DNA of 61,568 nucleotides, filler included, from Bipalium vagum (Eukaryota): the NCBI GenBank assembly GCA_037834085.1. It is 3 parts of 3 records of this genome, joined end to end, with 100 filler letters (N's around TTAATTAATTAA, not from the genome) between each part and the next. Parts side by side here need not be neighbours in the genome. Positions count along the whole stretch, not along the records: positions 1 to 19,362 come from JBBMKC010004398.1; 2 more parts are not named here. One strand, given 5' to 3'. This document shows positions 1 to 19,362 of the stretch, piece by piece (position 1 is the first letter of the stretch; every line of letters begins with the position of its first letter). Both the position numbers and the translations under genes were made by a program. The notes under the pieces were generated by a model. The model was not told where the DNA came from. It was given only the letters and a program-made list of their open reading frames with translations, and did no database searches.

Positions 1-290
1 AGGCATATCGGACAGCACATCTTGAATGTCCCACTCTACGTGCGACTTCAGCTTTAGATAAGCCACATTCCAATAATTCAATGATGCGACCACGTTCGAA
101 TTGACTTATTTCACGTCTGGCGCCCTTTTCCATTTTTATTATTTGGTAATTATTATATTAAAACAAAAAACTCTTGATTAGATTAAAAATTAAATTAAAT
201 TTAAATTAAATAGATTAAAACAGTTAAATAAAACATTTTCTTTATTTTTGGTAATAAATTCTACATTGCTAACACTTTTGAGCATGAGTA
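1..290 (-). mobile_element. 5' end of a Tc1/Tc3-like transposon; transposase N-terminal HTH runs off the window
   Basis: Minus strand from ATG at 133 reads MEKGARREISQFERGRIIELLECGLSKAEVARRVGHSRCAVRYA, a paired-like HTH. A Tc1-type TIR-like stretch (tatactcatgctcaaaagtgttagc, minus strand) lies at ~268-292. Confidence 0.75.
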
Positions 291-583
291 TATTATCAAA
301 TTTATTAAATATAACTTTTAATTTTATTATTTAAAAAAAGTTTTTTAATTTTAATTAAAATATAATTCTTAAAAAATTTGGATATTTTAAAATTTAGTTA
401 ATAAATTCAAAATAAATCGATGATGTGCTCAGTGTTTTGAAATAAATTATTTTAGATTATATATTAATATTAATAATGTTACTTAAATACGTACTCAAGA
501 CATAATAGGATAGTTATCGCAATTTTTTATTTAGAAACATATCTTTGGTAAATACCACTTAAAAAATATTTTTCCTCATTTTA

Positions 584-865
584 TTAAAACTTTAATTTTC
601 TGATTATTTTAGTATGGAAAGGAATCGACAGATCTTCCATTTCAGTATTTCCTAATCTTCCGTTTCACTCAAGGAAAATGTCTTGATATTCAATTTTTTT
701 CTGATCCTCCCTTGTCTCTGGTAAGTTAGTGGAGTGACTATTTGGAAAGACGTACTGATATTGCTGCCTATATCTGATTAAATAACTTTCATTCTTCCTT
801 TTCCAGGTTTTCTTTAATACCATTAAAAAGCCAATAATACTCAAAATCAATATGACTTGAAACAT
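584..865 (-). pseudogene. Small orphan signal-anchor membrane protein, copy A: 66-aa ORF with homology continuing past the TGA at 665-667
   Basis: 13/36 ungapped identities to the N-terminus of ORF 4075-4419. The same frame past the TGA reads NGRLGNTEMEDLSIPFHTKIIRKLKF*, matching HTKNNMRGIKF of that ORF. Confidence 0.55.
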
Positions 866-1374
866 TTCGGATTTGTTAAATAAATGTTAAACCTGAAAAC
901 TTTAACAAATTTATTTTTTTACGTTTCCGTATTATTAAAATATATTAATATATAATAAGAAAAGGAAAATGGGAAAGATGTAAAGTAGAAAAGAAATAAA
1001 AAGTTTGTGATAATGAGTGAAGAATCGATAATAAGGAAACATTTGAAAAATTAAATTAAAAAAAATATTTAATTGAGCTGGTTCTTTCATTATTACAATG
1101 TATTATTATGTCAAATGATTTTGTTGGCTTTGCCAAAGCTCACGAACCGTAGACCTAGAGACCATTAAAAGTCTATAATGGTAATGATTATAATAATAAT
1201 AAAATAATTATTTTAAAATGTACTTTTAAAAAGAATTAATTAATATTATTAATAATTTATCATAATATTATCTCATCGTTGAGATAATAATAAATACTTC
1301 TTAGAATTAATGGACTTTTCGAGGAAATAGCTTTTCCAAAGTAGAGATTCGCGGTCGTCGGCCAATCTCCACTA

Positions 1375-1991
1375 CTATTTAGGCGAGGGTTTTGATCAGA
1401 AATTCGACCAACAAAAAAGATAAAACAATTAGATCGCGCATTTCCTAAAGGTACATTCGAAGAATTGACAATTTGAAGAGGATTTTTCAGGTATTCGCAT
1501 CAGAAGAATAGACAATAAAAAGCCGAGAATCTGGAAGTTGCCATTGATATGGAACAATTATCAACAAAAGGAATTCCTGTAACTTGCAAACTCCTCCAGC
1601 TTTATTTAATAGAGAAGGTATTATCCTCATTTACAATAACACTTGGCCGCACTCTTCTAAAGTTACTCAACTAGAAATCCGTGAGTTGGGCTCTGAAGTT
1701 TTGCCTCGCCCAGCTTATAGCCCTGATATCTGGCCACCTTTTTCGATCATTGCAGCCTTTCCTTAAAGATAAAATGTTTTTCAACGGTGATGGGGTAAAA
1801 TTGAGCTTGCAATCTTTTTTGATGAAAGTCTGCCATTTTTTTTTATGGTATCCAGTCCTTGAGCAACAAAAATTGATAGATGATTATCGATAATGATAAT
1901 GATTACATAATTGATTGATATAATTCCGTATCAAATATGTTATTTTAAAACTTTGCTTTCTGATCATCGGTTTCTTTTCGGTATCCTAATA
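1375..1991 (+). mobile_element. Degenerate mariner remnant (3' catalytic part)
   Basis: IILIYNNTWPH (decayed HDNARPH), EVLPRPAYSPDI and LFRSLQPFL; TIR-like end ttttcggtatcctaata. Confidence 0.8.
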
Positions 1992-2669
1992 TATTTTTAC
2001 ACAATACTCAGGAAAAACAAGATAATTTATTCCTCCCTATTTATTGATAAAACCTAATACATTTTTTTGCGTGGAAAATTTGCAAAGTACAAAATTGATC
2101 TGATGCCATTGAACTAGATGGCCTCTTCCTTAAAAATTGTATTAGGATCACGACTGACAGACTGAATTACTTTCACCATTGTCTGTATTGAATTAAATGG
2201 AAACCTATCTATTTTTAAGTGTAAAAAATGCCAAGAAATTTCTAAAGAAAAACCAAATCTCCCTAACGAAAATGGAATTGTAGTGCAATTTATGTTTGAA
2301 GTAGCTCACGACTCGGCGATGTTGATTAAATTTATGACAATTAAATATGGAATATCATTTCTTCACCGTTGTCAATGAATAAAATCATTATGGTTTTCTT
2401 TCAAAAAGTATCTCTCAGATACTCAGGATAAAAGAAGTCCTTCGAAATGTCTTTTATTATTTAATTAGTTAATAATTTACAGAATTTATTACTTGTAATT
2501 TCCCAATAAGATTTGTCGAAAATTATCTATTCAGTTCGTTGAATAATTTTTCCAATAATCATTCAACCGGAAAATTTCTTCTCCAAACTGAATCCATCTC
2601 TAATCAATTTATTGTTCATAACTCGTATTTTTAAGTTGTAACATAATTTTTCGTGATTTTGGATAATGT

Positions 2670-3700
2670 TTATATATTTATGAGCAAAAATATTAATGAG
2701 AAATCAATCAATATGATAATTTTCAACAGTGTCGGAACTTTTTTCCAGAAATCGCGAGATCTACTCAAAAAGAAAGACGTCAACCACTTTTTATAAAGCC
2801 ACCCATGTTCTCAAAAAGCAGATTAGATTAAGATCAGTTGGCATATGGTCTGGGAAATATGGAGGGTGTTGAAATACGTCAACGTTAACCTCTTGGAGTG
2901 CGGTTTTGACAATATTTATTGCGTGTTGTTTCGAATTTTCGTGAAGAAAAATATTTTTGACTTGTTTATCCTGTCCATTCTCTTTCATAATGTTGTTTAT
3001 TCATTTGATTCTTTTTATTGATTTTTTGGATCATTTCACCGCTCAATTTCACTAAACAAAAATCATTCATTCTAAACGCCGTTGTGCAAACTGAAGTCGA
3101 CCAATACTTTCTGTGCTTCAGCTTTGCATACAAACATCATTTCTTATCTTCCGTTTATATATTAGATGAAGAAACCGTTCCTTGTGGTTGGTTTCTTCAT
3201 TTGTGTCTAGTAAGAGTTTGAGTTGCAATTTTTAAACGACTGTCTTTGATTTTTTTGTTCAGTCGATATGGCACACAAACGTCCAGTTTTTGTCTATACC
3301 TGATTGATTTTATCTGGTGGTAGACGGCCACAGTTTCACTGTTCTCTAAAACAAATTCCTGTATGATTGACGGCAGTAATCTCTTACGACTGCCATCAGT
3401 TGATCATCATCGAAATTGGATGATTGATCGATATGTGGAACGTCTTGAAAGTTGAATGTCATATTTTCGAATTTCTCGTATCAATTGTTGCATTAACCCA
3501 GACTATAAAATATTTCCATACCAAAATTTCATGAACCGCTTCTACAACTTTCTTATCTCGATTAAAATAAAATATTAATAATTGTTATTGATCAACTTGA
3601 TACTGCATTTCAAAGTTGTCAAATTTTAATAAAGTGAAATGACATTTTAAAAACTTTATTATACTTTTGTAGACCAAAATCGATTTTCCAGATAGATTTA
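2670..3700 (-). mobile_element. Degenerate mariner
   Basis: ORF 2791-2988 has FLHENSKQH...QHPPYFPDHMPTD (HDNA/YSPDL motifs). Upstream fragments resemble the KLDVWVPY and IxTxDEKW motifs. Boundaries approximate. Confidence 0.75.
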
Positions 3701-4074
3701 TAACTTAATGGAATAGTGTTAAAACCTGATGTGATGCTATTTATAATAACATAAAAATGGTAATGTTTTATGACAAATATTTTTAAATTATTTTGTTTAA
3801 ATATTAAAAGATGTGAAAATTTTTTAATCATTTTATTCGTTGAATTCAACATTTTCTTTATAAAACCAAATTTTTCCAATATAATTCTTTTTTAATTTCC
3901 TGAGATTTTTAAATTAAATCTTTTTAAAAATTTATTAATTAACACAAATAAAAATTAAAATTAATTTAATTTAATTTTTCAAATTAATTTTTTAAAAAAT
4001 AATTAAATTAATAAAAAAAATTAATTAATTTTGTTGAAATAATTACTATTAAAATAATTTTTCAAAAACTTACA

Positions 4075-4419
4075 ATGTTCCATTTTTCTATCATCGGTGT
4101 TGTAATTGTCCTATTGATTTTATTAAAGATTTTCCGAAAAAAGCGAAATGTCTGTCATTTAATCAGATTTACTGACGAATATGATCGACTTCTGCTAGGC
4201 AGAGAGTCATTTTTCAAGAAAATTAAAGAGACTATTTCAGTATTTCTCCACAGATTAAAGAGATATTTTCAACGTTCACCGAAAACCAAAACTTTCAGTC
4301 CACTTTATAAAACAAATAACAACGATCAGTATCGCTCTCTGTGGACCCATACAAAGAACAATATGAGGGGTATCAAATTCGAGCCCGTCAGTCTAATCGC
4401 CTGTGGTTTCGAACAATAG
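4075..4419 (+). CDS. Small orphan single-pass (signal-anchor) membrane protein, copy B, intact 114 aa
   Basis: Uninterrupted ORF with a ~17-residue hydrophobic N-terminus followed by basic KIFRKKR. It has two local paralogues, and the TNNNDQYRSLW motif differs from copy C mostly by synonymous changes. Confidence 0.65.
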   Translation: MFHFSIIGVVIVLLILLKIFRKKRNVCHLIRFTDEYDRLLLGRESFFKKIKETISVFLHRLKRYFQRSPKTKTFSPLYKTNNNDQYRSLWTHTKNNMRGIKFEPVSLIACGFEQ

Positions 4420-5574
4420 ATTTTAGCAATTTTAACTTAATTTCAATTCGTCATTAATTAGTTTATTTCGATTAAAATATGATAATTGTTTTCCATTTAA
4501 TTAACATGTGCAAAGGTATCAATTGATTTTTTATATGTTCAAGTCATCAAGTAAAAACCGTTTTTCTTTCCTCTAATTATTTTAATTGAGCAACGAAAGA
4601 ATTGTAAATTTTTGCGGAAATGTATTTTAATTATCGGATTAAATTTAATTGTTACATAATAATAAAATATTTAATAATAATTAAATGATTATTATCACTA
4701 GTTTTTGTTTCGTCAATTTTTGAGTGAGTTTTTCAACGCTCCAAGTAAATATTTTTGATAATAAAAAAAACATCATGAGACAAAAAAAATAAATATTTAA
4801 AAATTATTGTTTAATTTATTAAATAAACAACCAATCATTCTTTGATGATCAGAAAATTCTACGTTCATTTTGATGAAGGCGACAGCGTGTTACTTTGATG
4901 TTTATCCACATAATTTCGTTGTAGATTTTCTCAATTGTATATTTCCTGTTCTTATATAAGGTCGAAGATGGTTGGGTTCTCAAAGTAATGGTATTTTTCA
5001 TGTAGTAAGTTACTGTCCCGCAAGAAACATCTGAGAATAAATAAACCATGAAATTCACGCTTCGGAACCAATTCACACATTTACATAAAATCAAAATGCG
5101 TTAAAATACGTTTTCTTAAGGTCGATAATACATTCTTCAAATGATCAAAGAGTAAAATGAATCGATTTTTAGTTTTTTGACATGTCGATCATTTCTTCCT
5201 GCTTTTGTCCTGAATTTCTTTCCTTATTTTTTTCAAACCCTGTATCTTCATTCCGTACGCTTTGTAGGGGCGTTCTCAGTCAATGGTTGGAGTTTCACTT
5301 CTTTTCCCTCATTGGTAGAATTTTTTTACCCAAAAACCCACTCCCATCAGCTCATATGCAACACCAAAAATGATAACTTTCCTCTCAAGAATTAGAGGCT
5401 TGAATTTAAATAATTTTCCAGAACTATTTGAGATGACTTTGAGGATCACTGAATTTTCTGTAATGGTAAGGTCAAATTTAGTACGAGTTCCGTAATATAT
5501 GAAGAATCCATATTGGTATTAACTTGAGTTGGATATATGGATTTTAAGTCATTGTCATGTAACCTTCTCCTGAT

Positions 5575-6467
5575 AACTGCATAAAATCCAGCTTCCTTTA
5601 GTACTGTACTGAGATCGAATTCTGTGAAGTCTTTCCAAAAGTCGACACATCAATTTTTTATAATAAACAGCATTGACTGTTTTATTAGAAGATAGGAATT
5701 CTTTGTGAACGACTCTATCAGGATCAAAAACCGTGATCAGGAGGGTTTTAATTTTTGATTGTTGTAGCCGCAACTTTTTGGTTTTGGAGAGCTCTTTGAA
5801 CACCATTGCATGTTCTGTCGTTTGGTTTCAGACTCATATTGAAAACACCATGACTCATCACCAGTAAAAATTGATTTGATAAATTTTTGTCAGTATCACA
5901 AGTGAAAATGAAATTTCTGCAGCAATCAACTCTCTGTTGCAATTTTTCAGGAATCAGTCTGTGAGGAACAAACAGTGAACATATCTTTTACTTACCTAAA
6001 TCCTCAATCAACATTCTCCGAATCAATTCTCTATTGATTCCAGTTTGATTTTCCAGCATTCTTAATGTAATACGCTTACCGTCTTCAACAACTTCTTTAA
6101 TTTTGTCCATGTTTTCATCATTTCTGGACATTCTGTCATGATAGAAAGGATCATCACGGCCTGCATAAAAGCGAGAACATCATTCAAAGACTCCAGATCA
6201 TGACATTGTAATGTTCCCAATCACGATTTTCAACATTTCGTAGGCCTGGGTAAGTCTTTTGCCTAACACTTAGCAAAATTTTATATTCATTTTCTGTTCC
6301 ATTCTGAAATTATGACAATACTTAAAATGTTAGCAGATTAACTGAAATAAAATATTCAGGAATGTCAATGAACTGTATCATGTGCCGCCAACATAAATAA
6401 AATTCATTTTGCACATTATAATTCGCATTATAAAAATAGTCCTGGAACTTTATTGTCATACAATGTA
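5575..6467 (-). mobile_element. Mariner (irritans-like), 5' two-thirds, truncated before HDNA
   Basis: MEQKMNIKFC*CLGKRLTQAYEML from ATG at 6302, then WCFQYESETKRQNMQW and SKIKTLLITVFD..VVHKEFL; TIR-like end at ~6439-6467. Confidence 0.85.
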
Positions 6468-6639
6468 CATACGAGCACTATCTTAACAATACATACTAGC
6501 TGCTTGTTCGTAGGTATTCTGGGTACGAAAATCCTTACCACAAAACTGTAATTGCCAGAATCTTTGCATTGCATATTCGGAATGCGGTTTTTCTGTGCCT
6601 CTTACATCACTTTAATATACATTAAATAGAAAAAGAGAA

Positions 6640-7260
6640 AATTACAATAAAAAATATTATCAGCATTCATTTAGTCTTGAGAATATCAGCAATTCTTCGG
6701 AGCATGTGCTGGATCAATTCTCGTCAATAATCTGAAGTTATATCATATCCCAAGACATGTCTAAATCAGTGGCGCAAGTTTTTCGTCGACTTGGGCTTTA
6801 TCAACGAAACTTTTTTCTTTAGTAGGAATGAACAATTTTCTATTGTCTAAGAATCAGGCCACGCGCCAGACCAAGATTGTAAAAGGATAATGTTATTTTG
6901 TTGAAACCATTTTCTGACGTACTTTGCTCGAGCCCCGTCATGTTGAAATACAATGAAATTGAGTCTAGACAATCAATGAAGAAGTGGATCTTCAATAATA
7001 TTTGGATAAATGGCAATATCCATTTTATGCAACAAGCCCCATTTCTTTTGAAAGAAATTTATGTTTAGTAGAAGATTGACTTTGCAAATGTGATGGCAGC
7101 TGAGATTGAGGAGTTCCTAACGTTTGGGTTAAGAGTAAAAATTCTTTTAATCTTACGATCAATCGTGGTTAATGTCTTTCTGGATCGGCAAAAACAATTT
7201 TCTGAAGCACAGTTGTCAGTTATTGGGTTGTTTGGAAAGCCATTTCGCATTTTTTTAGTA
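6640..7260 (-). mobile_element. Internally deleted Tc1-like remnant
   Basis: RSRKTLTTIDRKIKRIFTLNP (GRPR-linker/HTH2), VFQHDGAR, and a LIQHMLRRIADILK C-terminal motif. Confidence 0.65.
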
Positions 7261-8430
7261 AAAAGTAAGACTAAAAGTTTTATTAGTAATAAATATTTTA
7301 ATCAATGATGTTTTGTCCTTTTTGTTCCAAGACCTTCTCCCATCTACCAGGCAATTTGAATATCCCAACCTTTAAAATGACTTAAGTGCTTTAAATTAAT
7401 ATTTAAAGATAGGTATAAAAAAGCGAAGTGACTTTCCGAATAACCCAATTCTTCTTGCCGAGCAAAGAGTTATATTAATGACTAACAACAATATGAGATT
7501 TGAATATATCACAACTCAGGACTGTACTCACTAAAGAAAGCCGAATAAAAGCCCTTTAAAACTGAAGAATAGAGATGATGTTTTCCTTGCTTCAGTGCAT
7601 TACACTGGTCCATTTTTGAAATGCTGGTGATGGAAAATATTGATCTTTTACGATAATTACAAACAAAAAAACTAATTAATGGACAAATTTCTAGCCCAAA
7701 GGACCCTTATAAAAAACATTGTCTTTATGGACTAGTGTATTAAATTTTTATTAATTATAATTAATAATAATAATTATTATTATTTTCCCGAAAATGTAGT
7801 GAAACCAAAATGGAAAAATTTTTTAAAAAAATTTTGTAAAATTTAACTGACAATTTTTCAATTACTGAATCTTTGTGACTGACATTGTGAAAGATTTTAC
7901 TTTAAAAAGATAACGTTGAACATGGAATAAAAATATGTGCTATTTCAAGTTTCCTATTAAAATTTGACATTTTCATGACAAAAATTCCAATAATTTAGCG
8001 TGACTTTTTGATAAACTTGTTGATTTTTTTCTGAATGTTCGTTTGAATGTCAATATTTAGATAAATTTTTTATTATTTAATAATAAATTATTTTAAAATA
8101 TCAGTTAAAGTGTTAATTAAAACTGAAAAATTCCGTTCAAAAATATTCAGGTTTTTCAAAATTATTTTCAAAATTAAATTAATTTAAGAAAATATTACTA
8201 AAATATTATTAAAAATAATATTTTTAAGCTGAGTTAAGGATATTTTCATAATTGATCATTTAATTGTGCACATTTTCAATATTTGAAGTCGTCAGGGTTT
8301 CACTGGTTTTAAATTGTAATTTCTTCTTTAAAATTGATAAAATCAGATAAAAAAAGATATAATAATCAATAAAAAATGGAATATCATAAGTTAAACAGAA
8401 TTTTATTGAATAATAAGAAGTGAAATTTAA

Positions 8431-8763
8431 TCAATTTTTTAAATTTGTTTTTAAGATTAAATTTTTATATATTTTTTTGTTTAAATTGAAAGATTTTTTC
8501 GATCTCCAAAGAGATCGGTACTTATCATTGTTGTTCGTGAATTATTGGATCAATGTCGGTTTCCTGTATGAACATTGGTTAGAAAAGTAATGAAAACTGT
8601 TCTTTGAGCTTTTTTCAAGAATATCGCTCATAAAATGAATCAAAAACGGAACTCTATGTATGAAATGATTTTTGTAACTATAGTGAAGTCTAAATGATTT
8701 CTGCACTTTGCTTAAAGCATTTGTGGAAAAGAATTTAAGAAAATTTAAGTTTACCATATTCAT
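8431..8763 (-). pseudogene. Small orphan protein family, copy C, with one in-frame TAA at 8542-8544
   Basis: FRLHYSYKNHFIHRVPF aligns ungapped with IRFTDEYDRLLLGRESF of copy B. After the TAA (opposite a TAT Tyr in copy B) the frame reads FTNNNDKYRSLW, versus KTNNNDQYRSLW. The N-terminal hydrophobic segment is weak or decayed. Confidence 0.6.
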
Positions 8764-9312
8764 AGTTCTAAATATTTATATTGGTATGTAATAATACTAT
8801 TTTAGAGACCTTCAGTCCATATCAACTAAATCCTTCGAAATAATAATATTGATATTAAACATTTTAAACACTGATCATTTATTTCATTTTATGTAGTTTT
8901 ATTTTTTATGTACAAAACCAAAATATAATTTTCTGTAATTTTATCTATTTATTTATTCCATGTAAAGGTTAAAACCCGGGTTTAATTATCTAATTTTTCT
9001 TTCCTTCTTAAAAAAATATAAAATATGTATATAAAAATTATTATTATAATTATAAATAATTAAAAAATAATCATTTTGATGATTAATTTGTAAAATTATC
9101 GGAAAAAATGTTTAGTAAAATAAAATTACTATAAATACTTTTTGAAAAAAGTTTTTAATAAATATTTCTATAAAAAAATTTATAGTGAAAAATTTTAAGG
9201 TAAATTCTAAAAATAAAAAATTACTAAATTTAAAAATGCAAAATAATATAAATACTGAAGTGTTTCAGTAGCGAAATATACAAAAATAGACACAAATAAA
9301 CACTCCAAGAAA

Positions 9313-9395
9313 AGTGGAACGGACAAGCAAAATCAGAATCGAACTCAGTGGAACCGACAAATTGAAACTCGAATAAAACTTAGTGGAACTGACAA
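9313..9395 (+). repeat. Three AGTGGAACnGACAA direct repeats (period 34-35 bp), possibly within a degenerate LTR
   Basis: Copies at 9313-9326, 9347-9360 and 9382-9395; tggtgtca (PBS-like) at ~9610. Confidence 0.7.
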
Positions 9396-12129
9396 AGCCA
9401 GAAGGAAGCATTAGACGCAAATCTAGAAGCTGAGAAAGGAGCCAACAAATAATAGACCATTAAACGATTAGTATCGATAACCAGCATCAAAAAGAAAGGA
9501 AAGCTTCAAACAAATAGTAAATTATTTTATTGCGATAGGTTTAATAGATTTGACTAAAAATCTAAATAAACTTTTATTTTTATTAAATTAAATAAAAATG
9601 TAATAATTTTGGTGTCACACTGCTTGCAGGTGAACCTATAATCAAGTAAATAATAGGAATTCAAAATTAAAAATTAAGCTATAATTCGATTACGAATTAT
9701 AATGCAATAAAATTCAGCTTCCTTTAGTACTGTACTGAGATCTATAAGTTATTAATTAAACTTTATAAATAAATACTAAAGATTGAACAGCTACTCCAAC
9801 ACTTTAGGATCAAAAAAATTTTTGTTTTTCACTGATTTCCCAGTATCTTCTTTTTTTGCGTTCTTCACGTCAAGTAGGACGGAGAACCGAATTTTTATCT
9901 GAGAGCCCTTGACAATAGGATACCGAAGGTGTTGTGACTTTTCTTAGCAATCTTCATATCTCGGTTTTTAACTCAAAAATAATTTGTAACAATAATAAAA
10001 TTGTAGATTTATATAAAAAAATATATTTTAATAAAAACTTTATTATCTCAGTTTATCGTTTTAAAGTTTAAAAGTTTAAAAGTTTGTATTTTACAATCGG
10101 TATTTTTATTTAAGTTGTCACTCGAAAATTTAACTCCGTTCATAGGCGCACTAAAACATTCTGAGTTATAAACAGTTTATGTTAAGTTTCTCAAAAATCC
10201 AACATCGATCTTTTTAACCCAACTCTTTTTAAATACACGTTTTCAGCAAACTTAACAATATATTATTAATATTGATTATTTTATATAGGTACATGACATA
10301 CCAGAGGTGGACAGGCTTAATGTACGTGTATTGTTATATATGATATAAAATATGATATAAATATATTTTTCTTCTTAGTTTGAATTAAATGTTAAATTTT
10401 ATAAATAAATTAACTGTAAAACATGTCATAAACAAGGGGTTCTACTTATGTTATGTATAAAAATGCGAGTACCTGCCTAATAGTTTAGATCGGTATAATA
10501 TATATATATATAATATAATTGATATTGTTACTGTTCTGTTTTAATTAACTAACATTCTTCTTAAATCATTTATTTATTTTGATGTTTATTTCGTCAACTG
10601 CAATGATATATAACTGGTTTTTAATTTTATAATCTTAATATTTTCATTATTATTGGTTGAAATTAATTTATTTAATCTTTTAAAACAATTTCATTATCAA
10701 AATTATCAAACCCATAGAAAATTTATTTATTTATTTATATTATATACATTATATATTTCATTAAAAATCGGAAAGGACTTATTTAAAACTCTGTATATGA
10801 TTGATAATGTTATTCTATTGATAGTCCCATAATTTTTTCGTTCAAAATCTTAATTTGGTTATTAAAAATTACCAAAATAATTAATTACTATATGAATTTT
10901 ATTTTTTAGCGTTTCTTTAATGGTTCTCAGTATTGCAAATTCATCAAAAATTTAATTTCATCAAAAATTTCAGATCAAATAAATTCATTAAATTTTTAAT
11001 TTTAAAGTCGCATAATTATTTTAAAATATTTTAATTCATTTTATTCTCTATGGGCAATATTATCAAATTTTGAAGTATATAAAACGATTTGTAAACTGAA
11101 AATCTCAGAATAAATTCTTTAATTATAAAATTTATATTTTGATTTCAAAAAATTTTAATTCTAAAATTTTAAAGGGAAATGATAAAATTGAACAAATCAA
11201 AATTTTTTCAATAATCTTATTTAAATAATTTTGGAGTATTTCATTAATTATTTTGGATTATTCTATTACTTATTATTCCGCTTGTATTAAAAGGTTTAAT
11301 TAAATTAATTTTTAAAATGTAAAACACAAAAATTTTGGAATGTCCTATAAGAAGATATACAAAAATATATTTGTCCATTTTCTAAAAAAGCCAAAACTAG
11401 TTAATTTAGATTGATGCAGAAAAACAAATACTTTACCAATTGATTTGATATTTGAAATTTATTAATATCAATAATGTTTCACGATAAATATAATGACTTG
11501 GTCATACAAATTTTCTTTATGCTTCATTTCGTGAAGCTTCTAACCACCCACGTATTATATACTTGTAAAAATGTATTTAAATTAATTTTTAATTTTATTA
11601 AAATTTAATTAATTTTAATTTAAAAAATAAAATAACAATTTTACTTTATCATATAACATACTTTTCCCTGTTTTTATGTTAATCTCTGGATTTCGATCTT
11701 TTATTGATAATGATTCGCATATCTTTCGTTCATCAATGCTATCAAAATTGTTCATAATCACTCTTAGCTCTTTTGCAAAATTATATAATATTTATAGGAA
11801 ATATTCTTTAATTTTAAACAAAAATTAAACTTATTTTGATGAAAACATTTAAATATTTTATTTTCTATTAATAAAAAAAGTGATTTCAATTACCATTTTT
11901 AAAATAATTTTCGTTATATATTTATTTAATTACTGCAAACCAAAACGTGGATCTAAATATAAAATAAATCTATTAATTATTACTGGAAAAAATCGGAACA
12001 TATTTCAAAGTGTATCAAAATAGAAAAAATTAATATTTATTTATTATAAAGAAAAATATAAATAATTTGAAATATACATATATTTAAATATTCTTTTTTT
12101 ATAAAAAATAAATATTTATTTTATGATTA

Positions 12130-12700
12130 TATTAAGGTAGTCGGAAAGTCTGGAGCATTCTAATAATTTCTAAATTAAATAATTAATATTTCATCAAAGA
12201 AATACTAAAAAATTAATTTAAAAAGCTTTGTTTATACGATTTTCAACTAAGACTTGTCACAACAAGGAGACCCGAAACATTTAAAAATAGGAAATTATTC
12301 TGTGATATACAAATTGTTTTTAGTGACTTAAAAAGGTGATGGTATTACCTTCGTTTTAACGGTTATTTCAAGAAACCAAAGTCATTTTTCTCCATAATAA
12401 AGCAAAACCATATACTTCAAATATAGTCAAAACCACTATCCAAGAACTTGATTGAAAGGTTCTTTAGCACCCACCATATTTCCCAGTTATTGCACCAACA
12501 GATTTCTATGGCTCTCTAACTAAATGAAAGATATTATTTTTGAGTAGGAAAAGAACTTTAAAAAGTGACTTCTAAGTAGTCTAACGATCATTGGAATAAA
12601 AGATTTGAGAATGTCTTAAAAAATAATGGAAACTACATTATCGTTTGTTTTTTCATTATTATTTTTAAATAACATGTTTTACTTATAAATATATTACACG
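12130..12700 (+). mobile_element. Internally deleted mariner remnant
   Basis: TIR-like ttaaggtagtcggaaagtc; FLHNKAKPYT...ELD*KVL*HPPYFPVIAPTDF. Confidence 0.75.
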
Positions 12701-12829
12701 TGTTCCAAAATTATCCTCACATCTTGAAAACGGCTCATGAAACCATTCATTTGATAGTTAAATTTATTTTTACTGTCCTAGACATCATCATAATTTATAT
12801 ATAGGTAATGTATATGAAGTTTATAATCA

Positions 12830-13330
12830 TGCGAATAATATTATCATGTCTTCTCAACAATTAGTCCCTTTGATAATGATTGATAGAACTTTGAATGATG
12901 AGAAATATGCTTAAGAAATTATTGAGAAGAATGTTGTTAACTTTAAAAAACATCACAACAACTTCTGGTTCCAGCATGACAACGCACATCCTCATTTTTG
13001 TGAAGTTACCATCGCTGCTTTAAAACAAAATACAACTAATATCATTCCATGACTGCTGCGCTCTCCAGATCTCTCCGTTATACAACATTTTTTGGATGTA
13101 CTTGGCAATAGATTGCGAAAACGGAGTATGTGGAACCACCGGCTTCCCGGGAATCTTTAAAACATTGACTGAAAGAGCAGTGAATATAGTTCCTTTTGAA
13201 GCCTTCAAGTTTTTGTTCGACAGTATGCCACGCCGAATTGCGGATTGTGCAGAAAAGAATGGTGGTCATATATCATACTGTTGGAAATTTGATCAATAAA
13301 TGTTTTTTTGACATTTGTATGTTCGTTTTT
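12830..13330 (+). mobile_element. Tc1-like transposase remnant (3' part)
   Basis: FWFQHDNAHPH, SPDLSVIQHFW, and FDSMPRRIADCAEKNGGHISY (typical Tc1 C-terminus). Confidence 0.8.
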
Positions 13331-14139
13331 AATAAGGATAACTTACAGGGTATTGCAAATTAATAGTTGCATGTTTTCATTGCATTTCTATTTCAACTGT
13401 ATTCAGAAAATTAAAGATGAATATCACCCGAAAAAGATTAACTTTAATTCCGGAGGAACGCAATACCAAGGAGAGAATTGATGAAAGAGCCATTTACGCA
13501 GGTCTCTCAGCACTGTAGCAGACAAGATAAATCCTCATCAAAACAAACATTTATCTATGAAAAACCTCTTGATTCGAGGAAAATCTGCTTCCGGTACAAT
13601 GTTTCTCCTTCTTTTTTTCTTTTTTTCTGTATTCGTCAGGTTGACAGTGTTTATATATTGATTAAAAGCGGCCTTTCGGCTACAGGGATTCCACAACAGA
13701 GCAAAAAGACCGCTCGTTGCCTGGTCATCTACTGCAACCAGGGTCTTACACTATTTAAGTCAGATGAAATTACATTGGTAATTAAAAATATCGTATCTTC
13801 CGAGGAACAATAGTATTTATTTCACAGTATTGCATCTGCGCAAAGATTTAAAAAGAAATATTAAGTTTTACCTTATTGTGTTTTAAATCATTTTTCTAAG
13901 TGGGAGATCATTTTGACTCACAATATATTATTGAAAATCACAAAAAATTATGCTACAACCTAATATATTTAATAAATTTTATTTAGATAGACTTATTATC
14001 TCTTGATCTAGTTAACCCAAAATCCCAAATGAAGCAAGCGTTTACATTTTGATACATCACATAATATCAGAAAAAATTAATCAGTTAAAGAGGTTGATTA
14101 TAACTTTTATGTAAAGTAAATGTATATAAATATTAAAAA

Positions 14140-14692
14140 GTACACCAGAAAAAGACAATGCTCACAGTATGGTTGTCTATAGCTTGTGTCATATATTTTT
14201 CGTTACTAAAGCAAGGTGAAACTATTAACTGTGACAATATTGTTCTAAAATTGAAATAATGCAGAAAACATTATGTATTAAACAACCGTCACTAATCAAT
14301 AGAAAAGGAGTCACCCTATTACATGACAATGCAAGACCACATGTGGAAAAGAAGACGTTGCAAAACTTGAAATACTTAAACATTGAAATTTTACCACATC
14401 CTCCTTATTCACTAGGCTTATCTCCGACCGATTACCATTTTTTAAGCATTTGGATAATTTGTTGGTTCAAAGAATTATTGCTGATCATGGTGATGTCTAT
14501 ATCACCATATCCGAATTCCTGGACTCCATAAATTCAGATTTTTATGTAAATGTGATTCTGAAATTTGTCTCTAGATGGGGAAAATGTGTAGAATCCATTT
14601 TTGAATATTTTATTTAAATAAAAATTTTTTTGGACTTTTTAAAATTTTTTTATTTATTACACAATCGGACATTTCATATGGAACACTTAATA
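14140..14692 (+). mobile_element. Mariner 3' half
   Basis: LLHDNARPHV...ILPHPPYSLGLSPTDYHF; TIR-like end cggacatttcatatggaacacttaata. Confidence 0.9.
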
Positions 14693-15219
14693 AATATATT
14701 TTTGCTTAAAAAGGACTTACAAAAATCCGAATACAAAAATAAACATGTTTTTTATTTCTAAAAGTATTTTCTTTTAAAAATAAAAATAATAATATTGTTA
14801 GCTAAAACTTAATCTGTTAGAAGAATTGACTATTACTTAACCTCAACCGAGCTCACAATCAGCAAATTTGTAAAGACTTCCTTCACATTCATTTGCATCT
14901 TTTCGTTCTTATTTAATTTCATTTTTCGAGCAGAAGAAAGGAGCAGTGTCCTATTGGCTTATGGTAAAAATCTTATTAAAATTTGTTTACTTTTTATTTT
15001 TTTAATTTAGGAATTATAATTCTTTAAAAATTCTTTATATTTTTACTTTTATTTATTCTTTATATCATCAAAATTTTTTAAAAAATATTATTTTTTCATT
15101 TATATATTTTAATAAATACTTATTATTTGTTTAATCTCAATTATTTTTATGTTCCCAACAATTATCAAAAATTATCTTGACTAAAGACGTTCTTAAAATA
15201 ATTTTCAATGATAAAGATA

Positions 15220-16435
15220 CAGGCTTTTTAATTCAAGTTGGAATAATTGTAATTCTATTTAGTACATTTTTAATTCAAATTCGTTTGTTTTAATTCAAGT
15301 TGATACATTTTTAATTCAAATTCGTATTTTATCTATTATTCTCTATTATTGGTAATTGGCTATGAAATTTATTGTATTTTTTCCATTTCCTCATTTTTAG
15401 ATTAGATCATGAATAGTTCAGACTGATATGAAGATTATACGTGTATCAATTAAGAGGTTACAGAGAATAAACATTATAAAATTATCAATAATGACTCAAG
15501 ACATAAAATTGTCTCAAATTATCAAAATAATATGAACCAAAGTTCTATTTCCAAAAATGAAAACCTACCTAAAAGTACATTAAGCCGCACAATTACAACA
15601 TTCAAAGCACCAGGTGAATTTACGGGGGGAAACGAGGTTGAAAAAAATATCATAAGATAAATTATGAAATAAAAACTTTCATCCAAGAGATTGTAGATAA
15701 TGATTGCACAGAAACATTACGGAATATTCAAAAAGTAATTTTTGAAAAGTTTCAGGTAAAAATATGCCTAGCTATAGTAAGAACCCTACATTACAACTTG
15801 AAAATGCAAAAGATGATCACAGAGAAAAGAAATGATTCCAAAACAATTGAACTTCGGAAACAATATGCATTACTGTTTGATACGTTGGATGATGAATTTT
15901 CTGACCCTAATATTTGACCATGAGAGTTATTAAAGGCAGGGCAAAGATTGGTTCAATATCAGTAACAACAGTTAAAAATAATAAATCTAAAAATGCAAGT
16001 GTTTGATGTGATATATCAAGAAATGGAATGTCCTTTCATGAAATTAATTACAAGCCTTACAGTAGTAGCTCATTTCGGAGATACATAAATAATTTTTTTG
16101 AATATATTGAAAACGAAACAGTCAGTAAATGTGTGGTTATAATGGACAACTTTCCTTTTCACAAGTGTAGCAGTGACAGAGATTTTTCAAGGAAAGGGAC
16201 ATTCTATAAAATACCTTTCACTCTACTCTCCAATGCTGAACCCAATCGAAAATATGTTTTGAAATGGAAGAATTTTGTAAAAGAAACAATTGTACTTCAG
16301 AAGATGAATTATTATATGCCATGAAAGAAGAACTAGATACAATTACTAGGGACACGGTGAAAGATAGTTTCGAAATATGAAATCCTAAAATACGAATTTG
16401 AAATTAAATAGTTCCGACTTGAATTAAAAACCCTG
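15220..16435 (+). mobile_element. Full-length degenerate IS630/Tc1-type (DDE_3) element with TIRs and TA TSD
   Basis: TA-CAGGCTTTTTAATTCAAGTTGGAA ... TTCCGACTTGAATTAAAAACCCTG-TA; VVIMDNFPFHK and frameshifted KYLSLYSPMLNPIENMF; subterminal TTTTTAATTCAA repeats. Confidence 0.85.
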
Positions 16436-16489
16436 TAAATATTAATTGAAATATATAATAGTTTTAAATTATGAAGATTAATGGCAGGG

Positions 16490-17290
16490 GTTCGTTAAAT
16501 AATTATTTATTATTAGAGGTTAATTTTCCTATCATGAAAATTAATATTTGAAGCCATCACTGATTCTCTTTTTATGTTTCACCCTAATAATTATATCCAT
16601 CTATTATGTCATAAAGTATGAAAGTAGATTTATTAAAGAAATCTTTGATAAGGACCAATTTATTTAATGAAAGTAAGCACCTTCAGCAAGTATATGCGTC
16701 TGTCACTTTGTTGGCAGATCGGAGATGCTTTTTATCAAAAAACTCAGGTTTCAGAGATTCGATGAATTGCATAAAGGCATTTTGGACAGCCTCGGGAGAA
16801 AATAAATTTTTCCCTTTAAAAAGTTATCCAGATTCCTAAAAGAAATAATATTCGGTATGTGCATGGTCTGGGGAATAAGGAAAATGATTAACGGTTTACA
16901 AATTCATCTCCAAGTTTATTAGTTTCACTCGCTTTGCAATGTATGAACAATAGAAAATTCCCTCTAGTCTTTTATCTTGACTTATCTATTAAAAGTCATA
17001 TCGATCTTCCAATTTGTTCTATACTCTTTCGAATTTAAAACAATATTTTGTTGTTTGAACTCCAATAACGTGTTACTTTTTGTTCATCTTACTGTCTTAA
17101 AAGAGAATTTTACAAATTGAAAGATCTCTAATTCTTATTTTACTCAAATTTTAAGCTTCAATGAATAATTACCCCATGAAATCTCAATGTTCTATTTATT
17201 TTTTTAAAATATTGTTTTGGATTTTTCTATTCTAAAAAAATTTTTCAACTTGGAAAGTGATAAGCTATCCCTAATTTTTCTGCCAATAAT
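16490..17290 (-). mobile_element. Degenerate mariner remnant
   Basis: Minus strand reads HFPYSPDHAHTEYYFF at ~16840-16885; boundaries approximate. Confidence 0.6.
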
Positions 17291-17373
17291 GGCACAAATA
17301 TTTTCTTTTTTTAATCTAAAATTTTTCTCAAAAAGTTAATTACACAGATAAATGAACAGAAAATCTTTAAATA

Positions 17374-18667
17374 CAAAGCGCGTAAAAAGTCTGTTCACCC
17401 CCTATCAAAAATACTAATTTTGATTTATATTTCAATTTAATTATAAATAGTTGTTTAAATATTAACTTTTTGTAAAGATATTTAAATAATGTAATCAAAT
17501 ATAACATATTTTTAAATTATATTTGTCAAAAAATCTACAAATTTATTGTTTTAGATAAATAAAATGTCTAGATATTTAACAGAATTACAAAGATGTTGCA
17601 TTTTTGCATTACGGAATAATGAATATTCTTGGACTGAAATATGTCAATAAATCTTGGAAAAGTACAACAAGACGGTGACAAAACTTGGCATGCAATATAT
17701 TTGGAAGAAATATCTCGAAACAGGTTCGGTGAGTGATAGGATGAGAAAAGGCAGACCAACCATTGTTTCACCACTAGCTTCACGAGCTATAAGATGCATT
17801 TACAAAGCGAACCGCTTTGCATCTGTTCCTTATATCACCAATAGGTACAATTCAAGTTATGTCAGAAATGTATCTGTCAATACCGTCCAGAAAATTCTGA
17901 AAAAAAAATATGGTTTTCGAAGTTTTACAGAAATTAAGAAGCCATATTTGAAAATGCATCAACGATTCAAAAGACTTTCCTGGGTTAAGACTTACAGTGC
18001 TTGGGATGCAGATAAATGGGGAGATGTAGTATTCAGCAATGAGTGTTTCTTTCAATCCTATTCGCATTTGAAAAGTATAACCCTACCTTTACCCACCCAG
18101 TTATGGGAAATGGCCCATCCATTCATGTCTGGGGTTGCTTCAGCAGTAATGGAGTTGGATTTCTAAAAAAAATCACTGGAAATATGAATGCCGAGAGATA
18201 TCAAAAAGACATTTTTCATGACTTAGATCTAGTTGGCAAATGCTTAGTCTTTCCAAAAGCAGCATTCGTTTTTCAACAAGATTTAGCTTCTCCTCATAAG
18301 GCCAAAAGTACCCAGGCTTTCCTAAAAAATAAAAATATTGAGTCTTACCTTGGCCAGGTAATTCTCCTGACCTGAATCCCATAGAAAATATCTGGGGTAT
18401 CCTTAAACGTCAACTAAGTCCAATGAAACATAATTGTGCTGAAGATTTATGGAATGAGATCAAAAACAAATGGTACAACCTTTCTCGTAACACATGCCAG
18501 AAAATTGTGAACTCAATGCCCAAAAGATTAAAATTGGTCAAGGAATCCAAGGGATATCCTATTTAATATTAAGACTTGTTCATTTAATAAATTTCGTTGT
18601 TTAAAATATTCTTTTCAATAAAAATTAGTTTTTTTTTAGGGGCTGAACAGACTTTTTACTAGCACTG
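17374..18667 (+). mobile_element. Full-length Tc1 (DD34E-type) element with a frameshifted transposase pseudogene
   Basis: TIRs gtaaaaagtctgttcacccct / aggggctgaacagactttttac flanked by TA. ORF pieces from ATG 17564: RKGRP, VVFSNEC, HVWGCFS, VFQQDLASPH, WPGNSPDLNPIENIW. Confidence 0.93.
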
Positions 18668-19362
18668 TAATTAGTGATATTCACTTTTTACTTTTTATTG
18701 TTAATGTGAAAGAATCCTTCCCCGGAAAACAATTAAAAAGAAATTAAATAAAAATTAAATGGAATAAAATATAAATAAATAAAAAAAATAATTATTACTA
18801 TTGTTGCGGTTATTATTTTTATTGTTATCATCAATTAAAACAAAAAAATCTAAATATAAAAATACAGAAAAATAATTTAGTAAGTATAACTTACTAAAAA
18901 TAGATTTTATACATATAATTTAATGATAGAAAATATAAATAGAAATATATTGATAAAAAATTATAAATTTAGTAAAAAAATATTACTAAAAATAAAACAA
19001 TAATTAAAAAATGTATATATATAAATATAAATTGAAAATAACAAATTGCACTTACAATTACAAGACAAACGAGCTCCTGCATAATTAAATCCATCACGGC
19101 AATATATTAGATCAAAATAAATATTCAAAATAAATCACCCACGAAGATCAAATTGAATATAAATATGATTAAGGCAACAATTTGAAAACACATTCACAAG
19201 TTATTTATGCGAACAAGTAAAATTTCTTTATTTATTATAATCTTATTATTATATTTTTTCTTATAATTTAAATTTTTGTAATTAGTATAGGTTGCGTGAA
19301 AAGTTCTGAAAGCGAAAAAGAAAAAACGTAAATTTTTTATTTAAATTCATATTATTATATAA

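Follow-up and report, generated by a model that had tools for sequence, protein, structure and literature searches.

Do the short open reading frames (ORFs) at one end of a 61,568-nt stretch of the Bipalium vagum genome encode a family of small membrane proteins, or are they noise from AT-rich DNA? Throughout, the window means this whole stretch, of which positions 1-19362 are contig C4398 of an assembly of 440 Mb in 272,664 contigs; GC content is ~27% in the host genome and ranges from 18 to 35% in the window. The genome has at least 58 matches to nuclear-receptor zinc fingers and none to arthropod cuticle proteins, insect odorant receptors or fungal Zn clusters, which points to an animal that is probably no arthropod. 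A sequence-only reading of the window had proposed a local cluster of three related genes, which we call A, B and C. Our analysis suggests that A and B are probably two diverged members of an unannotated, taxonomically restricted family of single-exon genes. Sequence comparison indicates that the family is real, previously undescribed and of an ordinary kind, with two members in the window. The supposed three-copy cluster, however, turned out to be these two members plus one 33-nt island, in a family that is dispersed over five contigs.

Three queries, namely B, A and a family profile, were run against the 440-Mb genome, and all of them returned one set of five additional loci, spread over four contigs other than C4398. 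With B as the query, the open frames of these loci were ~50% identical to it over the first 40-50 residues; each frame is exactly 89 codons long, starts with Met-Phe and stops at the same aligned position. Gene A used alone recovered the five intact members at genome-wide E values of 1e-5 to 2e-4. The seven-member profile, based on alignments A1 and A3 (upstream regions were aligned as A2), recovered all seven at about 1e-26 to 5e-40 genome-wide, together with two marginal loci. The family is thus dispersed over at least seven loci on five contigs, accompanied by at least one decayed relic (Table 1). Such a search was the check that the sequence-only reading had itself proposed, and none of the five additional frames has a transposase or viral domain. 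Matches inside the window were judged against 300 dinucleotide-shuffled windows and in-window comparisons. A permissive BLASTN of the window against itself gave AT-rich low-complexity noise only, with no DNA repeat linking A, B and C. A further candidate copy at 7107-7289 of the window (tblastn E 0.07) was rejected, the region being the 3' end of a mariner element with inverted repeats.

Table 1. Positions of the putative family members, associated elements and neighbouring features.
Feature	Sequence	Positions	Strand	Remarks
Gene B, family member	Window	4075-4419	+	114 codons, stop TAG, intact; profile and BLASTP
Gene A, family member	Window	665-865	-	66 codons, in-frame TGA (667-665) at codon 67; profile and BLASTP
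A continuation past TGA	Window	626-664	-	Still aligns to family C-terminal region
Family member C25732m	C25732	2611-2877	-	89-codon intact frame
Family member C25732p	C25732	6491-6757	+	89-codon intact frame
Family member	C122677	14465-14731	+	89-codon intact frame
Family member	C72645	737-1003	-	89-codon intact frame
Family member	C239910	9792-10058	+	89-codon intact frame
Relic L013	C237239	7699-7794	-	Juxtamembrane block and promoter-like element kept; stop in place of helix
Doubtful relic L012	C163246	10657-10827	+	Marginal match with three stops
Upstream element of B	Window	4028-4046	+	2 mismatches to consensus; TTTGTT core 45 nt before ATG
Upstream element of A	Window	893-911	-	4 mismatches to consensus; TTTGTT core 44 nt before ATG
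C island	Window	8506-8538	-	11 codons; same amino acid as B codons 80-90 at 10 of them
Post-island frame at C	Window	8431-8505	-	24 open codons and stop; stop-motif distance as in B (empirical p 0.011)
Decayed mariner-type transposase fragments between A and B	Window	1584-1893; 2791-2988	+; -	ORF translations; tblastx matches to mariner remnants 12369-12503 and 14286-14444

The similarity between A and B was the starting point of the proposal, and the reported alignment is reproduced by BLASTP (13/36 identities, ungapped, E 1e-5 as a single comparison). Its score alone is modest, as B reaches at least 26.6 bits in 5 of the 300 shuffled windows, and it is the five further paralogues elsewhere in the genome that validate it independently. 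The two shorter motifs said to be shared downstream, KKI..FL and HTK..R..KF, are not collinear: the HTK of A lies beyond its stop and beyond the C-terminal motif, whereas that of B lies ahead of the motif. Overall, A and B share only 22% identity and each occupies a long, unresolved branch; they therefore do not stem from a recent local duplication. They lie in divergent orientation ~3.2 kb apart, an arrangement mirrored by the pair on contig C25732, where a 427-bp inverted duplication (85% identity) has ~3.6 kb between its copies.

Gene B is intact. Its layout comprises a transmembrane helix at about residues 4-20 (maximum Kyte-Doolittle mean over 17 residues, 2.99), five basic residues right after it, a juxtamembrane block with an invariant Tyr, and a C-terminal motif. 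It matches positions 1-89 of the family profile at a genome-wide E of 1e-30, and carries ~25 extra residues in the variable middle compared with the 89-residue members. At synonymous sites B stands apart, with a proportion of synonymous differences (pS) of ~0.8 against every other member, at or above saturation, while the others range from 0.14 to 0.58 among themselves. B may be an old lineage or may use different codons.

Gene A retains the transmembrane helix, the basic stretch, the juxtamembrane block and the middle motif, and its family similarity does not end at its TGA. A profile built without positions 626-664 aligns 626-865 to positions 1-81 of 89 at an E of 8e-26, with the one TGA inside. 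Because the similarity extends beyond the TGA, the stop probably arose rather recently as a nonsense change, or else is a truncating variant. Against other members, the ratio of nonsynonymous to synonymous proportions (pN/pS) of A is 0.72-0.87 overall and ~0.5-0.6 in codons 1-46, a weaker constraint than in B. By these signs A appears to be a recently disabled or truncated copy. Signals of the AATAAA/ATTAAA type lie downstream of both genes, at 4471 for B and at 596/585 for A.

We further compared the DNA upstream of the family genes. In the 160 nt before the seven ATGs there is one conserved block of ~19 nt, with the consensus AATTTGTTGAAGTAATCAC, located ~45 nt from the ATG in all seven loci. 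A pattern combining this element with ATGTTY at the right distance has four matches in 440 Mb, all of them family members, and none for the reversed control. The reading frame 5' of the ATG is closed in most members, so the conservation of the element is non-coding in nature. It may represent a family-specific core promoter or 5' leader, and transcription of the family would then probably depend on it. Five members also share a CGGAA box ~20 nt farther upstream; in A it lies at 929-925, 64 nt before the ATG. Separately, a GC-rich box ~90-115 nt before the ATG is seen in C25732m, C25732p and the C122677 member only (alignment A2, columns 93-115). It contains an ACGT core and TGACGCAA-like sequences that resemble cAMP response element (CRE) and C/EBP-ATF sites; A, B and the two older members lack it. 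A 5' hairpin noted in the three recent paralogues was dropped from consideration, the other members being without it.

What, then, is C? The motif comparison that had brought it into the cluster is exact to the letter: 4312-4344 (+) of B and 8538-8506 (-) of C differ at seven bases, of which six are synonymous and one exchanges Gln and Lys. The surrounding gene, by contrast, does not hold up. The single frame that had been drawn from 8763 to 8431 is broken by a TAA at 8544-8542, two codons before the motif, and the region consists of a 73-codon ORF, the stop and 35 more codons. The pattern R....Y......R..F, held to tie C to B, is a chance resemblance, as the 73-residue product is unlike any member (shuffle p 0.26-0.89). 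The transmembrane segment already described as weak falls away altogether, with no hydrophobic helix at C. When the window was translated in six frames with stops masked and searched with the family profile, C had no match up to an E of 1000, and no upstream element was seen near it. For the ORF upstream of C, an assignment to DUF684 (PF05075) was rejected at 17.9 bits against the 25 needed, and a genome-wide DUF684 search came back without the window. Judged from its sequence, C is neither a family member nor a third gene.

The island itself nevertheless calls for an explanation. It could be the remnant of a B-like duplicate that was partial or has decayed, or a short patch of gene conversion, rather than a coincidence, and we put this just short of an even chance. 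B attains at least 29.3 bits in only 1 of the 300 shuffled windows, and the island is the sole diagonal in the window with at least 25 of 33 matches (it has 26). A degenerate motif pattern hits B and C only in 440 Mb, with none for the control. The stop codon lies at the same distance from the motif in both, and in B the motif sits within the semi-conserved middle block of the family. The frame after the island shows a weak similarity to the B tail (p 0.06). Set against this, ungapped DNA identity drops to 28-30% on either side of the island, which is background. Aligned with gaps, the two neighbourhoods score inside the range of the shuffles, so the flanks do not fit the uniform neutral decay of a dead copy. 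There is neither a profile match nor a promoter element at the island, three other diagonals in the window reach 24 of 33, and the synonymous pattern that first drew attention is partly due to ascertainment, the search having been made on protein sequences. At most, C would be a 3' scrap of a B-like copy, and it may be chance.

Returning to the family, its members share a simple architecture. Each has one hydrophobic peak at about residues 2-22, with a 17-residue Kyte-Doolittle mean of 2.7-3.1, and elsewhere the best value is at most 0.6. No charged residue precedes the helix and 3-5 Lys/Arg follow within the next 12 residues; the N-terminal transmembrane segment with basic stop-transfer that had been described in A and B is borne out in both, as a hydrophobic peak and then Lys/Arg. 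The residues that never vary are Met1 and Phe2, a Leu-Lys pair where the helix ends, an Asn, the triplet Leu-Ile-Arg, and a single Tyr and Ser. The Tyr is followed by Leu, Phe or Val at +3 in 7/7 members and preceded by acidic residues in six, so that a Tyr-x-x-hydrophobic motif lies ~15 residues from the helix within the juxtamembrane block. The middle region is variable, and the final ~12 residues form a second conserved motif. In the tails of the seven members there is no conserved Cys and no conserved N-glycosylation sequon.

Each gene would thus encode a single-pass membrane microprotein of ~89 residues, made of an N-terminal helix, a basic stretch and a ~65-residue tail. Under the positive-inside rule the basic flank of a helix stays on the cytosolic side, and long N-terminal hydrophobic segments that follow no other domain tend to insert with the N-terminus out. 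Because of these two tendencies, the helix can be read as an uncleaved signal-anchor with a cytosolic tail and a short N-terminus on the outer or lumenal side, a topology that we modestly favour. The lack of a conserved Cys or sequon in the tail would be consistent with a cytosolic location. A cytosolic tail would act through short linear motifs, in adaptor-mediated sorting or partner docking, and not as a folded enzyme, and the Tyr-x-x-hydrophobic motif would be placed within reach of adaptor complexes or SH2-type readers. We hold this reading of the motif with less assurance than the topology.

The main alternative to a signal-anchor is a cleaved signal peptide with a secreted product, the proteins being precursors of secreted peptides or prohormones in which pairs of basic residues are processing sites. 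Small proteins with an N-terminal hydrophobic segment followed by Lys/Arg pairs would suit such a role, one member has a Gly-Lys-Arg site in mid-protein, and the middle changes rapidly, a trait of many orphan peptides that are secreted. On inspection, however, the hydrophobic run of 17-19 residues is followed at once by charged residues; a polar c-region and small residues at -1 and -3 are both missing. Conservation is highest in the last part of the helix and in the juxtamembrane block, an uncommon pattern for signal peptides that are cleaved off, and conserved Cys, amidation or dibasic sites are lacking from the tail. We consider secreted precursors distinctly improbable.

A signal-anchored microprotein presupposes translation, and several patterns indicate that selection acts on the encoded protein. 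Paralogue pairs with a synonymous divergence (dS) of ~0.7-1.1 still agree in frame length and stop position, and in the surrounding DNA 7.3% of codons in all frames are stops. In 8/10 pairs of intact members pN is lower than pS. For most of these pairs the Nei-Gojobori ratio of nonsynonymous to synonymous rates (dN/dS) is 0.41-0.55 over the full length and 0.22-0.46 in codons 1-45. Between B and the five 89-residue members, pN/pS is 0.49-0.54 (Fisher p 1e-6 to 3e-8). GC content at third codon positions (GC3) is 0.33-0.45 in the members, compared with ~0.23 GC in the DNA flanking B. Homology between diverged paralogues is limited at the DNA level to the ORF, ~136 bp upstream and 16 bp downstream, and conservation is patterned at the amino-acid level and not uniform along the DNA. 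Conserved non-coding DNA or chance AT-rich ORFs that are never translated might be invoked instead, as AT-rich DNA readily yields hydrophobic, Lys/Asn-rich peptides and pN is close to pS in recent pairs. The preservation of frame length and stop position at such divergence, the significantly lower pN in most pairs, the raised GC3 and the amino-acid-level pattern of conservation make this very improbable.

Could the family belong to something already known? A profile search of 1.84 billion representative proteins gave no match at E <=0.001, and no relative was found by a word-index protein search, in PDB sequences, in PHROGs, in viral contigs or in metagenome contigs searched by protein. A back-translated motif search of metagenome contigs had one match, dismissed as chance because it lies inside a long unrelated ORF. 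The best value in the ESM Atlas was 0.85, below the usable level, and the Pfam-A matches, to a family that differed from member to member, all scored 13-18 bits where the cut-offs are 21-28. For six members the exact product was looked up, and no record was found. The original impression that no known domain is present therefore stands across Pfam, PDB, PHROGs and the 1.84 billion representatives. Of the description as a lineage-specific, locally duplicated microprotein family, the family itself and its lack of relatives in the libraries searched are upheld, and the local duplication is not. Lineage-specific is to be read here as having no relative in those libraries.

Some known systems are nevertheless alike in design. 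Microsomal cytochrome P450s have an N-terminal anchor and a basic halt-transfer sequence and are type III (N-out/C-in) signal-anchor proteins. The present family resembles type III signal-anchors in a helix that starts at residue 2-5, has no charge before it and is followed by basic residues and then by a Pro/Gly-containing stretch. The more positive flank is C-terminal of the helix, as in that class, weakly so in the C25732/C122677 clade. There is no homology to P450s, and the family has a ~65-residue tail without a catalytic domain and a topology that is predicted. The regulins (phospholamban, sarcolipin and sarcolamban) are tail-anchored proteins of 30-50 residues with a C-terminal helix, thought to bind a partner. 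They too are small single-pass membrane proteins, but the present family has its helix at the N-terminus rather than the C-terminus and a longer tail, and no sequence similarity to regulins was found. Chordopoxvirus A13L (PF05961) shares an N-terminal helix and short tail; B scores 13.6 bits against a 24.1-bit cut-off and is the only one of the seven members to match, and this assignment was rejected. The closest parallel in kind may be the translated animal small open reading frames (smORFs) of ~80 residues, which are reported to be enriched in transmembrane motifs (Aspden et al. 2014, PMC4359375). These "longer" smORFs are like the present genes in size class, single exon, predicted transmembrane helix, protein-like conservation and the ease with which gene finders miss them. 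They form a descriptive class and not a homologous family, without sequence relationship to the present ORFs, which are predicted from sequence.

How did such a family come to look as it does? It would evolve by birth and death, leaving B intact with its ~25-residue insertion, A with a premature TGA, and one wreck on another contig. A recent event is visible in a 921-bp block containing one family gene, which is duplicated at 94% identity between C25732 (locus L016, 2320-3241) and C122677 (locus L017, 8102-9022; both in locus coordinates). The fullest account that we can offer is that of an orphan family, arisen de novo or diverged beyond recognition, driven by a private core-promoter element. 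It would encode N-out/C-in microproteins whose Tyr motif feeds into adaptor trafficking or tyrosine-phosphorylation signalling, would turn over by birth and death, and would have acquired the B/C island by short-patch conversion. Taken whole, this account is unlikely, and we offer it tentatively.

Several points weigh against the main reading, of A and B as members of a family of membrane-microprotein genes, and should be stated together. In two recent pairs (C25732p with C25732m, and C25732p with the C122677 member) pN is about equal to pS, this being concentrated in the C-terminal half, and the ORF of the 94%-identical young pair is conserved no better than its flanks. The estimates of constraint come solely from paralogues within one genome. 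After the helix, net charge is only about +1 in the C25732/C122677 clade, Tyr-x-x-hydrophobic carries little information as a motif, and both the topology and the function of the motif are drawn from sequence rules alone.

The existence of the family is not surprising in itself, since small membrane proteins confined to a lineage are frequent among invertebrate genomes. If expressed, it would be an animal gene family of several copies, overlooked by standard annotation and without a relative among 1.84 billion representatives. The shared promoter element would ease the study of its regulation, and the clear motifs add to its value. It also provides a worked example of how a smORF family can be told from AT-rich noise, through paralogue recovery, conservation of frame length, pN/pS and conservation of the promoter.

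Least likely of all is that the ORFs derive from a mobile element or an integrated virus, as its cargo or remnants. Mariner/Tc1 debris abounds in the window and on other contigs, the promoter of one paralogue borders on a mariner end and the 921-bp block has sharp edges, but there are just 7-9 copies in 440 Mb, that block has no terminal inverted or direct repeats, the ORFs contain no transposase or viral domain, viral contigs gave no match, and homology of diverged copies stops at the ORF and ~136 bp upstream, so the family is not a transposon. The sequence-only reading had likewise seen no transposase motif, and A, B and the other members indeed lack such a domain. Tc1/mariner elements share the contigs of the family and explain much of the A-B spacer; the family ORFs have neither their transposase nor their inverted terminal repeats nor their high copy number. 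The mariner fragments between A and B (Table 1) lie outside the family and widened the spacer.

The window as a whole is mostly transposon debris around two small genes; a scan of it for tRNA and Rfam families gave no match. Besides the two fragments in the A-B spacer, broken transposase frames of Tc1/mariner type occur at 5555-5806 (-), 12369-12503, 14259-14531 (+), 16028-16324 (+) and 17654-18375 (+), with Pfam matches, some sub-threshold or partial, to Transposase_1, DDE_3 and HTH_Tnp_Tc3_2. The 3' end of a mariner element, together with the inverted terminal repeat, lies at 7184-7450 of the window and also at 6224-6366 of locus L016 on C25732 (72% over 146 bp), and a second, opposite-oriented copy of the terminal repeat is found nearby in the window. 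On C25732 this mariner end adjoins the promoter of C25732p, and paralogue homology stops there; the similarity of the C25732p upstream region to window 7184-7378 was accordingly rejected as family homology, being that of an unrelated mariner neighbour. Inside a Tc1-like element, an 85-bp stretch at 18064-18148 of the window is 93% identical to C239910:45-128, which marks the element family as young or recently active. The window also contains a 45-bp direct repeat of 93% identity, at 5573-5616 and 9699-9742.

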